The position numbers were made by a program, and so were the translations under genes. From contig SMSO01000034.1 of assembly GCA_004764695.1 (NCBI GenBank), forward strand, positions 2,232,001-2,296,000: a stretch of DNA of 64,000 bases, given 5' to 3'. Positions 16,784 to 40,795 of the stretch are shown here, in pieces. The notes beneath the pieces are model-generated. The model made no database searches. It was given only the letters and a program-made list of their open reading frames with translations, and had not been told where the DNA came from. Source of the DNA: Schizochytrium sp. TIO01 (taxonomy: Eukaryota; Protista; Bigyra: Labyrinthulomycetes). Position 1 is the first letter of the stretch. Every line of letters begins with the position of its first letter.

Positions 16784-17133
16784 TGTGATTTCTAAAGGTG
16801 CTAAAGTATTCCAGATACGAGATTGATTTTGCAATTAATCTCCTCTGGCTGATGCCCTCTTCGCGGCGCGAAGATGGGTCTTGACTTTTGTAGCACGTGC
16901 TAACAACTGGTTGCAATCCTAAAACCTTAATAGCACTCCAGAATCGCCACTTGCACAAGCGTCCACAACCACGTTAAATATCTCAACCAAATTGGAGTTT
17001 GCTTTTTGATATAAACACACGTCCCCTTGTCCTTTCACGAAACCTCGTTTGCCTCTGTTTCGGTGGTCTCGACGCAGCTCATTTATGTAGGTTTGCATCC
17101 CGCCTTACGCAGCGCGTTCAATTCCCAATACAC

Positions 17134-17275
17134 TATCGCCTATTATGAATGGGTTATACTCTACACAAGTGAAGTATCGGCCATTCTCCCTATAGTATTC
17201 CCCTCAATAGCCTACTTATATTTTTTCGAATCTACTCAGGGTGCGCACCGATCGGGATATCCCGACCTATCCCTC
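17134..17275. promoter_or_regulatory. Cluster of AGTRRRKTATA-like motifs in both orientations plus adjacent perfect palindromes, upstream of the cNMP-RGS gene
   Basis: AATGGGTTATA at 17148, AGTGAAGTATC at 17168, reverse-strand AGTAGGCTATT at 17206-17216. Palindromes GGTGCGCACC (17240-17249) and TCGGGATATCCCGA (17252-17265). Confidence 0.4.
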
Positions 17276-36778: not shown

Positions 36779-37822
36779 CTAGTTTGTGAACATGTACTTG
36801 TTGGATGAGCTGAACGAGGGTCCAAAGACAGCCTCATACTGGAGCTTCTGGGCCTCTGCTGCACGGACTGTGTTTTCCATAAGCATCGAGGTGGTCACTG
36901 GACCAACACCACCGGGCACAGGGGTAATCCACCCAGCCACGTTAAGGCAAGAATCCATATCTACATCACCAACAATAGACTCCTCACCAGTCTCGGGGTC
37001 CTTGACAGGGTTGATACCGACATCGATGACAGCACAGCCAGGTTTGAGCATATCGCCGCGAATCAGGTTGGCCTTACCTACAGCCACGAAGACGGCATCA
37101 GCCTTGCGAGTATGCACAGAGAGGTCACGAGTCATGTGGTGGCAGGTCGTGACGATGGCTTGTTCATTCATGAGCAGAAATGAGATTGGTTTACCAACGA
37201 TCTCGGAGTGACCCACCACAACGCAGGAAAGGCCCTTGAGGCTACGTTCAGGTCCACTAGCAAGGCTTGTGGATTTGAGGCACGCCACAGCTGCCTTGGC
37301 GGTACAGGGGACAAGGTCTGACTCATCATAGACGACGTTGCCAATGGATGTCGGGTGCATTCCCTCGACATCCTTAAGAGGGTGGATTGCATTTTGCACG
37401 GCATCCGGGGACAAGTGAGGCGGGAATGGTCTCTGCATGATGATTCCAGTGACTCTAGGATCTTGGTTGATTTGCTCAAGCACGCTGACAAAGTTGGGGG
37501 AGCTCACCTCAGCACTGACGGCAAGCTCTTCAAAGACGATGCCGCATTTCTCGGCAACCCTGCGCTGATTCTTGACATACCATGCAATCGCGGAGTCCTC
37601 TTCGTCGACATCTTCGACATCAGGATTGACCACAACTGCGTGGGAGTACTTCTTCTCCAAACTCGCCGGGAGCTCGCTGGCCTCTGCCTTGAGCGACTTC
37701 TTGAAGACCACTGAGACCAGCTTCGGCTGCCACCCCGCCGCCGAGAGGCTCTTCACCTGCGCAGTGACCGTGCGCCTGCTCTGCAGCGCAATCTGCGTGC
37801 CACGAATAAGCTTGTGCGCCAT
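36779..37822 (-). CDS. folD: Methylenetetrahydrofolate dehydrogenase/cyclohydrolase (FolD family)
   Basis: Likely start MAHKLIRG at 37822. KDVEG, PCT, VVVGHSEIVGKP, IDVGIN, GDVD and TPVPGGVGPVT motifs. Confidence 0.93.
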   Translation of the reverse strand: MAHKLIRGTQIALQSRRTVTAQVKSLSAAGWQPKLVSVVFKKSLKAEASELPASLEKKYSHAVVVNPDVEDVDEEDSAIAWYVKNQRRVAEKCGIVFEELAVSAEVSSPNFVSVLEQINQDPRVTGIIMQRPFPPHLSPDAVQNAIHPLKDVEGMHPTSIGNVVYDESDLVPCTAKAAVACLKSTSLASGPERSLKGLSCVVVGHSEIVGKPISFLLMNEQAIVTTCHHMTRDLSVHTRKADAVFVAVGKANLIRGDMLKPGCAVIDVGINPVKDPETGEESIVGDVDMDSCLNVAGWITPVPGGVGPVTTSMLMENTVRAAEAQKLQYEAVFGPSFSSSNKYMFTN

Positions 37823-38489
37823 TATCCTTAAGAAACCTCGCGCCCCGGGACGTCCACGGCCCTCGAGCACGACAGCTTTATGCAAATCGCAAATTGCAAT
37901 TGACTTCTTCGATGACGCAAATTTTATCACTTTTCTTCTCCAAAGTTCACTTCTTTTCCCCATATTATCCCATAGAAGATGCTGTTCTTTCTCTTTTTCT
38001 CTTTAATTGTCATCATCCATAAAAACTTTAACTTTATTCTCTCTTCGGTACTTCATATTCATTACCACATATCCTTAATTCTATAATTATCATCACTTCA
38101 GTCAGTTATTCTCATCGACGGAATCGACGTTGAGGCCTGAGCACGATTGCTTCGCGAGATCAGGAATGAGCACTGACGATGGCATTGGGTGACACGCTTA
38201 TTCGTTGATTGAGTCATCGATTGAGTCATTGATTCATTCATTGATTCATTCATTGAAACCACTTTCCTTCGGCTCCTTTCCATTTCTGCAGCATCTTTTC
38301 AGTCTTTTTTTATAGAATTTTATAAAAACATCCCGCGCTGTTTCCAAGTTGACTTCAGGGGGGTAATCTGTGAAGATCTTTGTAATTCCTGCGCGTTCTG
38401 CAAAGCTATGGCGAATGTTTGAATTCTAATATAGTCTCACAATACACCCCTCCCGTTCCCACACGTTCCCGCGTGAGCCGGTGTCCACA

Positions 38490-38813
38490 AGTGAGTTATA
38501 CGGTTAGAATACAGTAGAGAATACAACCCTCATAAAGTGAGTTATGCTCGAGATATACAGTGGGGTATACGCCTTGTCTACTGTGGGGTATGTGGTAAGT
38601 CTACAGTAGAGTATAGAAATGTATTGAAGAAGGGTATAGGCGCTGTAAGTGGAGTATTCTTGAGTGTAAGTAGGTTATAGGGGCGCTAAAGTGGGAATCA
38701 CAGCCCACGCACGGTAGCAAGTTGACTATGTTGCAACTGCAAGTGAGTTATAGGATAGCTACAGTGGGATATAGGATATTTGAATGGGTTTTACAGTTTA
38801 CAAGTGGGTTATA
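38490..38813 (+). repeat. Phased array of 15 degenerate 11-bp motifs (consensus AGTRRRKTATA) with variable spacers
   Basis: Motif starts at 38490, 38513, 38536, 38559, 38582, 38605, 38628, 38648, 38669, 38690, 38720, 38742, 38763, 38783, 38803. Confidence 0.85.
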
Positions 38814-38923
38814 GCTTGGTGTCACGATGGCGGAGGACATAGGTTAGGTGATACTTGGTCGTCGTCGATGGCGCAGAGTATCTTGAAATCAGAGCAAAAC
38901 CGCAGGGCTTGGCTCCATAGACG

Positions 38924-40795
38924 ATGTTTGGCAAGGCCAGCGATGTGTCAGGTGGCAAGGAGAGCAAGCTGAATGGCAAGGCCGTGAAGGGCCTGGTGGC
39001 CACGCTGTGCAAAGCGTTCAAGCCGGCGACTGCAGAAGATCTCAAGGACAAGCTTGGTTTTCACGCCAAAGCTGACGTCTTTCAGAGCAAGCTGCCGAAC
39101 AAGGCTGTCATCTACGGTGTGGGCAAAAAGGGTGAAGCGGACTACTGTCTGCTTTTTATTGATGTCAACGGCCGTGGAGATGTCTTCTACCCGACCGTAG
39201 ACGCGCTCTGGAAAATGCCCTCGCTGTTGCCCGAACTTGTGGTGCACGCGCCTGTGAGCAAATTTGTCGTGGGCAAAAATGCGGATGTAATGCTCCCTGG
39301 CGTTGTTCGTGAGGTCGAGGAAAGAGTGGCTGGATCTTGCTTTGGAATTGGCTCTGTTTATAAGGGTCAGCGCAGGGCTCTCCGTGCCCGTGGTAACCCG
39401 TGCCCATTCGCCGTTGGCGAAATGCTCGTGGATAAGGAGATGATCTATCACGGGGGGTTCCGGGGTAAAGGTATGCAAGTGCTGCATCGCTACGGGGACC
39501 AGCTTTGGGCACTTGGCGGTAAGCATAAACCGAATGAGGGTTTTCTTGACGATCATATTGTGGCCACGGAAACTCTTGCAGATTCATCTGATGATGAGGA
39601 CAACGGCGATGATGATGAAGAGGGCCAAGACGCCTGGGACGAAGGAACCGCACAAACCCAAGCTTCGATGCCCCCTTCAGTGCCTGCGGCTGAAGCTGCT
39701 GAAGGAGAACAAGAATATGGAAATAAAGATTTAGTAGAAGAGAACAATGCGGAGGACAATACTACGGAGGAGGAAGAGGAGCCATTAGATATGAATACTT
39801 TGGTTGAGCAGACGTTTTTGCAAGCGTTGAAGAGACATATTAAAGACCGCGAGCTTCCCATGCTGGTAAACCAGTTTTTCTCAAACGTACTGCTGCCTTG
39901 CAGGCCGAAGAATGTTGTCTTGAACCTCAAGCAAACCAAATATAAGAAAGTGGGTGTGTTCATGCATGCAATGGAAGCGAAAGGGATCATCTCACTGCAG
40001 GACAAGGGTAACGGTGTTGAGGCCCTTAAAGATGTCTATCGTGAAGCTCCAGAGCTGCGCGAGTTTAAGCCATGGCCTAAGGAGCAAGAGTTTCAATTTT
40101 CCTCAGAGGAAGACCAGGATGCTCAAGGTTCAGGGGGCAATGCGCACGGCCGCGTTATCATCGAGGAGCGTTGGAAACTCACCGGGAACAAAGCATTGAA
40201 GGAGGTGCTTGCAGATGCCCAGCCCACAAAGTCGCAGCAAGGTTACCTTACTGCTAAGCAAATTCGAGATGCTGTTCTTTCGTATGCAGACAAGCATAGC
40301 CTAGAGGACGTCACGAACCGCCGCTTTATTTTGCTCGATGGAACCTTAGCAGATGCTCTTTACCCGGCCAAGAAACGCAGCAATGGCGAAAACCCGCCTC
40401 TCAAACTTGAGAAGGGTCAGCTTGCTGACCTCCTTATGCAGCGCATGCAGGTAGGACACGAAATTACCTTTCCTGACGGGACTCGAACTAAGTTTAAGTC
40501 GGGTCCAGCACCAAAGATCAGCGTTCTAGAAGAGCAACGCCAGGGGCGCAAATTTGTTACTCGTGCCTGGGGCCTTGAGGTCTTCGGCCTCGATGCAGAG
40601 ACCATTGCTCGTGATGCACAGCTTAAGTTCTCTAGTTCCTGTACAACACAGCCACGGCCTGGTAATACGACTGCAATTGAGGTCGTCATCCAGGGCAGGG
40701 TTTTACGAGACCTTGCTGCTATGCTTGCTGCTCAACACGGGCTCCACGAACAGAAACACTTCCAGACTGTTGACAAGTCGGGTCGACCCAAATAA
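38924..40795 (+). CDS. EIF2D: Eukaryotic translation initiation factor 2D (ligatin)
   Basis: MFGK start, YPTVDALW, pre-PUA/PUA (NADVMLPGV, HRYGDQLW), KQTKYKKV, SWIB-like region and C-terminal SUI1 (RQGRKFVT...EVVIQG). Confidence 0.93.
   Translation: MFGKASDVSGGKESKLNGKAVKGLVATLCKAFKPATAEDLKDKLGFHAKADVFQSKLPNKAVIYGVGKKGEADYCLLFIDVNGRGDVFYPTVDALWKMPSLLPELVVHAPVSKFVVGKNADVMLPGVVREVEERVAGSCFGIGSVYKGQRRALRARGNPCPFAVGEMLVDKEMIYHGGFRGKGMQVLHRYGDQLWALGGKHKPNEGFLDDHIVATETLADSSDDEDNGDDDEEGQDAWDEGTAQTQASMPPSVPAAEAAEGEQEYGNKDLVEENNAEDNTTEEEEEPLDMNTLVEQTFLQALKRHIKDRELPMLVNQFFSNVLLPCRPKNVVLNLKQTKYKKVGVFMHAMEAKGIISLQDKGNGVEALKDVYREAPELREFKPWPKEQEFQFSSEEDQDAQGSGGNAHGRVIIEERWKLTGNKALKEVLADAQPTKSQQGYLTAKQIRDAVLSYADKHSLEDVTNRRFILLDGTLADALYPAKKRSNGENPPLKLEKGQLADLLMQRMQVGHEITFPDGTRTKFKSGPAPKISVLEEQRQGRKFVTRAWGLEVFGLDAETIARDAQLKFSSSCTTQPRPGNTTAIEVVIQGRVLRDLAAMLAAQHGLHEQKHFQTVDKSGRPK

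Follow-up and report, generated by a model that had tools for sequence, protein, structure and literature searches.

Helically phased arrays of a short bipartite motif form a dispersed family of candidate promoter elements in Schizochytrium sp. TIO01

Introduction

Clustered and phased sites for DNA-binding factors are an established concept. The 21-bp repeats of SV40 carry Sp1 GC boxes between the divergent early and late promoters, and Gal4 sites occupy the divergent GAL1-GAL10 promoter in yeast. In Plasmodium falciparum, SPE2 arrays located upstream of subtelomeric var genes are bound by the ApiAP2 factor PfSIP2. The Su(Hw) array of the Drosophila gypsy insulator, with 12 degenerate sites in ~350 bp, lies inside a retrotransposon and has a boundary function, and the iterons of plasmid and viral origins (R6K, pSC101) are direct repeats of 17-22 bp that bind the initiator cooperatively. 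In plants, the promoters of genes related to translation carry telo-boxes, or short interstitial telomere motifs, and fungi have Tbf1/Teb1 sites.

The cis-regulatory DNA of thraustochytrids, a group comprising industrial producers of DHA and ecologically important marine decomposers, is almost entirely uncharacterized. Here we describe a 15-copy array of a short motif in a 64,000-nucleotide stretch of the Schizochytrium sp. TIO01 genome (hereafter the window), together with the genome-wide family to which it belongs. The array was first noticed from the sequence alone, and that description is referred to below as the original prediction. The novelty lies in the unusual regularity of this instance; the principle itself is not new.

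Results and Discussion

Anatomy of the array upstream of eIF2D

The array is located between the divergent genes encoding a FolD-type enzyme and eIF2D (Table 1). As originally predicted, it consists of 15 motif copies, every one on the plus strand, with successive start-to-start intervals of 23 (six times), 20, 21, 21, 30, 22, 21, 20 and 20 bp. Six copies match AGTRRRKTATA exactly and the other nine carry one to four mismatches, all within 324 bp of non-coding DNA. The number of exact matches expected in the whole window is 0.25, while eight are observed, a total reached in none of 100 shuffles. When scored with a matrix derived from the array copies, 12 copies obtain 13-20 bits and copies 10, 11 and 14 are weak (8.6-9.9 bits). 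The 11-mer is mostly preceded by CA, AA or AC at positions -2/-1, which agrees with the flanks first described, and is usually followed by a G. Elsewhere in the window, a weak mini-cluster (PWM ~11.7) is found at 17148-17216, where two plus-strand copies 20 bp apart and one minus-strand copy lie in intergenic DNA upstream of a minus-strand gene starting near 16834.

Table 1. Positions in the window of the array, its flanking genes and the associated transcript boundaries.
Feature	Position	Strand	Remarks
FolD-type methylene-THF dehydrogenase/cyclohydrolase CDS	36779..37963	-	Pfam THF_DHG_CYH; divergent neighbour
Intergenic stretch holding the array, without transcriptome-like contig	37971..38874	.	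Three public runs (X1, X3, X12) from three studies
Array, 15 phased copies of (C/A)A-AGTRRRKTATA-G	38490..38813	+	20-23 bp start-to-start, single 30-bp step
eIF2D transcriptome-like contig 5' ends	38875..38908	+	Three studies: 38875, 38903, 38908; approximate mRNA start
eIF2D/ligatin CDS, 623 aa	38924..40795	+	Pre-PUA, WH_eIF2D, SUI1 domains; co-oriented, downstream of array

The spacers measure 9-12 bp, with a single one of 19 bp, and they do differ among themselves as had been claimed: their mean pairwise identity is 0.24-0.29, against 0.25 expected from base composition, while that of the motifs is 0.69. Likewise, when the array is compared with itself at shifts of 21, 23 and 46 bp, identity rises at the motif positions only. 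With motifs 69% alike and spacers at the random level, the array is not a uniformly decaying minisatellite, and the spacers do not align as a uniformly diverged 23-bp unit, the outcome that the original prediction had named as speaking against it. Tandem Repeats Finder does not call the array, because the whole units are too dissimilar. Three of the spacers (1, 4 and 5) share 58-67% mutual identity, and a 46-bp register is visible across the first six units, which suggests that part of the array arose through unit duplication; the likeness of these spacers would represent the trace of older duplication events. The initial statement that the array is unlike an ordinary decaying minisatellite therefore stands as far as random spacers and a retained motif are concerned, but it needs qualification in that arrays probably grow by tandem unit duplication, the motif alone being retained by selection afterwards.

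Flanking genes, transcripts and strain variation

The distance to eIF2D was correctly given as about 110 bp, the last motif ending at 38813 and the ATG standing at 38924 with 110 bp between, and Pfam confirms FolD as the divergent neighbour, its ATG being located 527 bp from the array. If contig ends are taken as approximate transcription starts, eIF2D transcription begins 62-95 bp past the end of the array, as seen in the RNA-like contigs. On the other side, the FolD contigs of three transcriptome-like runs end at 37889-37970, these again approximating transcript ends. The 15-copy array is thus absent from assembled mRNA and is clearly upstream DNA, not 5' UTR. The FolD-side half of the intergenic region also contains a compound microsatellite of TTGATTGAGTCA, ATTGATTC and TCAT units (38205-38256), at which the Logan contigs of a DNA run break.

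In the DNA assembly of another strain (run X22), the array is covered without indels, and its copy number at the eIF2D locus is the same in the two strains compared. Six SNPs lie inside the array, one in a weak motif copy (38517) and five in spacers (38526, 38531, 38549, 38572 and 38759), a bias towards spacers that is suggestive and, by simple arithmetic, not significant alone (about p=0.1). Just upstream of the array, eight SNPs relative to the same strain are crowded into 24 bp (38405-38428), a far higher density than within the array.

A genome-wide family with a strict spacing rule

The original prediction implied that the array was unique and proposed scanning the genome for motif clusters with a 20-23 bp periodicity. 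Such a scan of the 64-Mb genome (37 contigs), using reversed patterns as control, reveals instead a dispersed family. AGTGRGTTATA occurs 269 times against 52 for its reversed control, and AAGTRRRKTATAG 394 times against 57. Exact direct pairs with a gap of 8-12 bp, that is with motifs 19-23 bp apart, number 89 against one in the control, and triplets with up to two mismatches number 100 against six. An exact pair is present at no fewer than ~80 distinct loci genome-wide. Within this family of at least ~80 arrays the eIF2D array is the longest example seen, and its five overlapping triplets are the highest number for any locus among the matches listed.

The spacing between motifs obeys a strict rule. 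When the permitted gap was opened to 0-30 bp, 116 direct pairs were obtained, of which 89 have a gap of 8-12 bp and most others a gap of 29-30 bp, the latter skipping a degenerate middle copy. Among 100 direct pairs listed, none has a gap of 13-19 bp and one has a gap of 0-7 bp. Inverted pairs are rarer and equally constrained: nine of the 13 divergent pairs (control 0) have a gap of 15-17 bp, and eight of the nine convergent pairs (control 0) a gap of 3-5 bp. Simple arithmetic on these gaps gives, for direct, divergent and convergent pairs alike, a distance of 20-22 bp from the T of one AGT to that of its neighbour, with outlier distances near 11, 32 and 43 bp. The recurrence of AGT half-sites ~21 bp apart in three arrangements implies a same-face rule of about two helical turns. 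The rule holds regardless of orientation, with the AAGT half of the motif as its centre, and therefore points to DNA geometry, the proteins lying on the same face, and away from an RNA product.

For a closer view of the family, 38 other arrays were taken with 3.5-kb flanks, and the context statistics given below rest on these loci. In their 129 motif copies, information is confined to positions -2 to +11, the consensus reading A-A-G-T, three purines, K and T-A-T-A-G, with 1-2 bits at the motif positions and <0.2 bits in the spacers. Same-strand neighbours are 19 (4), 20 (21), 21 (20), 22 (12), 23 (9) or 24 bp (1) apart, followed by 41-43 bp, a distribution that is biased as the 38 loci were picked by an exact pair at a gap of 8-12 bp; the open-gap count given above is free of this bias. 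The arrays usually comprise 2-4 copies and occasionally 5-8, which makes the 15 copies at eIF2D exceptional.

An all-against-all blastn comparison of the 38 loci retrieved no common flanks, spacers or terminal inverted repeats beyond the motif pairs and simple repeats. Flanks and spacers being unrelated, the arrays do not constitute a dispersed transposon or MITE family. In two arrays (C33:944087-944160 and C36:790829-790881), adjacent 21-bp units are identical, spacer included, and represent recent unit duplications, which shows that growth by unit duplication is ongoing. Some divergent gene pairs are separated by mirror-image arrays. At one such locus (L045:3446-3614; contig C36, about 665146-665314), with four copies on the minus strand and four on the plus strand, the flanking divergent genes encode an ankyrin protein and a RAB3GAP2-like protein.

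Genomic context and neighbouring genes

Gene calls around the 38 loci were based on ORFs of at least 150 aa and are crude, and the intergenic class was restricted to arrays with both neighbours within 1.5 kb. By these ORF-based calls, 12 arrays of this class lie between divergent genes, three between tandem genes and none between convergent genes. The motif points in the same direction as the nearest gene start at 24 loci and in the opposite direction at 10 (p=0.024; 34 loci, crude ORF-based calls), and for gene starts within 400 bp the corresponding ORF-based numbers are 14 and 3 (p=0.013). The orientation bias towards gene starts is thus moderately significant. The distance from array to ATG for starts within 400 bp ranges from 14 to 372 bp, and in divergent regions the array is not consistently closer to the co-oriented gene. 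At a distance of 75-225 bp, the flank upstream with respect to the motif direction has an AT content of 0.54 and the downstream flank one of 0.43 (p=7e-5), an asymmetry that is expected if the arrays point into gene starts. Beside the arrays themselves an AT-rich tract is absent in the 38 loci, AT content there being flat or lower than further out. Along one contig (C30:1119664-6606400), seven consecutive plus-strand arrays are followed by six minus-strand arrays. Taken over all contigs, neighbouring arrays have the same orientation in 35 cases and different orientations in 29 (hand count), giving no significant indication of orientation domains on the Mb scale.

The annotated neighbours of the arrays include eIF2D, an eIF2B-family subunit, NSUN2 and aquarius, and further SNF2, MRG, two JmjC proteins, a CNOT4-like and a CCR4-like protein, Tim44, an M16 peptidase and RAB3GAP2. 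Others are HisH/F, a Cys/Met PLP enzyme, an OPT transporter, a folate-receptor-like protein, an aldehyde dehydrogenase and a cation-efflux protein, and an inositol polyphosphate kinase and a piggyBac-like DDE protein are also found. No convincing functional coherence and no clear regulon emerge among these annotated neighbours, and genes for chromatin, RNA and translation are loosely overrepresented (those from eIF2D to the CCR4-like protein in the above list). The piggyBac-like protein is encoded by an 843-aa ORF (L033:4000-6531; C13:2562699-2565230) with a DDE_Tnp_1_7 domain, located 473 bp downstream of a 3-copy array, and may be a domesticated transposase. At four loci (L016, L020, L023 and L027, central 4 kb), arrays occur without any ORF of at least 120 aa within ~2 kb, one of them (L020) having two arrays 700 bp apart; these surroundings may represent intron-rich genes or non-coding regions.

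Telomere repeats, CRISPR and searches beyond this genome

Contig ends of this genome carry TTAGG telomere repeats, in agreement with a report on Aurantiochytrium limacinum (10.1101/2023.06.15.545109). Seven nt of this repeat, TAGGTTA, recur in the commonest motif variant, AGTAGGTTATA, which accounts for 22 of the 129 copies (~17%). A telo-box or interstitial telomere identity, which would call for at least 1.5 telomere units, was rejected as a general explanation, the 7-nt overlap being limited to one variant and the invariant AGT and TATA not being telomeric. Near the arrays, no enrichment of the telomere-like 8-mer AGGTTAGG was found. Two TTAGG units do occur as TAGGTTAGGT at 38840-38849, 27 bp past the array and ~30 bp before the start of the longest eIF2D RNA contig. 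A CRISPR array consists of near-identical repeats of at least 23 nt with spacers of at least 26 nt, in a prokaryotic context with cas genes. This identity was likewise rejected for the present array, with its degenerate motifs of 11-13 nt and spacers of 9-12 nt on a eukaryotic nuclear chromosome.

A protein search with eIF2D retrieved, apart from the identical protein, a single metagenome protein with 44% identity. Scanning metagenomes with the pair pattern gave perfect tandem repeats and chance matches, and no arrays with unique spacers. The matches of a viral scan were dismissed as chance resemblance, being AT-rich giant-virus metagenome contigs with a perfect 19-bp tandem repeat lacking unique spacers; the repeat unit begins TAAGTGAATTATAG (L172:3077-3653, also L182, L194, L197, L211, L217 and L220). 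Rfam gave no match in the intergenic region of the window or in the 38 loci. In the literature, motif strings were found in unrelated papers only, and thraustochytrid promoter and ATAC-seq papers do not describe the motif. The view that this is not a described element is in keeping with the searchable literature, in which no account of the motif was found. Its core GTGRG resembles the CSL/RBP-J site; a search for the LAG1-DNAbind domain gave no match in this genome, the control genomes being equally silent.

A candidate platform in promoters

The element is real and non-random, and it is probably functional. The explanation that we favor, with a probability of roughly 0.6, is that the arrays are helically phased clusters of sites for a putative sequence-specific factor, acting as an upstream promoter element. 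Each unit would constitute a 13-bp bipartite site (AAGTR ... TATAG) for a putative sequence-specific DNA-binding protein, and a spacing of ~21 bp, or two helical turns, would bring the bound proteins to one face of the DNA, where cooperative contacts are possible. A platform of this kind, located 60-400 bp ahead of the mRNA start and in many cases flanked by divergent genes, would make chromatin accessible and/or stimulate transcription of the gene beside it, in this instance eIF2D. An asymmetric site of 12-13 bp would suit, for instance, a multi-finger C2H2 protein or a two-domain factor, although this is speculation. The motif is conserved at many unrelated loci where the spacers are not, and the array at eIF2D lies upstream of the transcription starts marked by RNA-like contigs, gene starts at the other loci being ORF-based. 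The core of the original prediction, that proteins bind cooperatively to a platform with a period of about two helical turns, is supported by the retention of motif and spacing and not of spacer sequence, the binding as such being inferred. It is further strengthened by the hundreds of copies, the strict 19-23 bp phasing, the promoter location and the polarity towards genes. Among the options first listed, a transcription-factor array fits best.

The same geometry would be compatible with a platform serving a non-transcriptional role, either as replication origins recognized by ORC or another initiator in an iteron-like manner, or as a boundary or insulator between divergent genes. Direct repeats at about two helical turns are typical of iterons, the 21-bp same-face phasing is kept in three orientations, divergent intergenic regions are preferred (12 of 15) and the neighbouring genes lack a common function. 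This role is nevertheless considered unlikely. The ~80 distinct loci with an exact pair are a lower bound, and the true total would decide whether the density fits that of origins. However, the AT-rich unwinding tract and the initiator (rep) gene of an iteron-type origin are not seen, the annotated neighbours being ordinary cellular genes. Moreover, the polarity of the arrays follows the nearest gene start and the flank composition, as expected of a promoter element and not required of an origin, and chromosome-scale orientation domains are not evident. A bolder version holds that the arrays are not factor sites for transcription at all but sequence-defined chromosomal landmarks, marking origins by an iteron-like array or insulating divergent gene pairs as boundaries, and must be considered decidedly unlikely. 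If it were true, this stramenopile would join the small number of eukaryotes, budding yeasts aside, in which origins or boundaries are specified by a readable DNA code.

Other readings fare worse against the same observations. Short motifs in direct and inverted order are typical of the ends of CACTA/hAT-type transposons, and the mirror-image 4+4 array together with the array upstream of the piggyBac-like DDE gene could recall subterminal repeats of a DNA transposon or MITE, or sites of a domesticated transposase. Such an origin as mobile-element relics or targets is highly improbable: blastn among the 38 loci shows neither shared terminal inverted repeats nor shared internal sequence, the motif would have been eroded along with the spacers, which carry no information, if old copies had decayed uniformly, and the arrays are restricted to promoter regions. 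Equally improbable is the notion that the single units or the entire array are transcribed as such, with TATA-plus-initiator modules in repeated form or as the template of short processed RNAs. Every unit does contain a TATA followed about 14 bp later by CA/AA-AGT, and the units share one strand and are directed towards the gene. Yet 14 bp from TATA to the next unit is too short for the usual Pol II start, the phasing kept in inverted pairs reflects DNA geometry, and the small-RNA template proposed initially finds no support, the contigs of all three transcriptome-like studies leaving the array uncovered and Rfam being without a match. Finally, a neutral, decaying 23/46-bp minisatellite without function would account for the likeness of spacers 1, 4 and 5, for the 46-bp register over the first six units and for freshly duplicated identical units elsewhere (e.g., C33:944108-944160, C36:790829-790881). 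In a neutral minisatellite all positions of the unit diverge alike and the repeat is locus-specific, while here motif and spacer identities differ sharply, a strictly phased motif with unrelated spacers recurs at ~80 or more loci, and the two strains show no copy-number difference at eIF2D. This last reading is extremely improbable and already contradicted.

The arrays thus offer a countable regulatory element, with a 13-bp motif, a strict two-turn rule in three orientations and at least ~80 loci holding an exact pair. The putative factor, its cooperativity and its effect on transcription become directly testable through this family, the 15-copy array at eIF2D being the best natural substrate. 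The element is also a candidate building block for synthetic promoters in Aurantiochytrium/Schizochytrium.

Comparison with known systems

Each of the systems introduced above shares some traits with these arrays. As to telo-boxes, the variant AGTAGGTTATA overlaps the telomere repeat and eIF2D is a translation factor, but the telomere-like variant is carried by ~17% of the copies and the invariant parts of the motif are not telomeric. The likeness to iterons is one of geometry only, as direct repeats at about two helical turns, since iterons belong to extrachromosomal replicons and are accompanied there by an AT-rich unwinding element and by a rep gene, features not found with the arrays. The gypsy Su(Hw) array is similar in length and copy number and likewise consists of degenerate ~12-bp sites with non-conserved spacers; it differs in its mobile-element context, for which there is no counterpart here, and in its boundary function, a role which is only a candidate for the present arrays. 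Closer in several respects are the SPE2 arrays, also found in a protist and composed of a bipartite short motif in regular spacing, strand-oriented and upstream of genes. SPE2 is, however, subtelomeric, tied to one gene family and to heterochromatin, while the arrays described here are dispersed along chromosomes beside diverse housekeeping-type genes. As in the SV40 21-bp repeats and the Gal4 clusters, several copies of one site are located upstream of a start, often serving divergent genes, at a spacing of ~21 bp that would place factors on one face of the helix, and the site alone is conserved. What distinguishes the Schizochytrium arrays from these is a new motif, present in up to 15 strand-coherent copies, and a phasing rule that recurs at ~80 or more loci.
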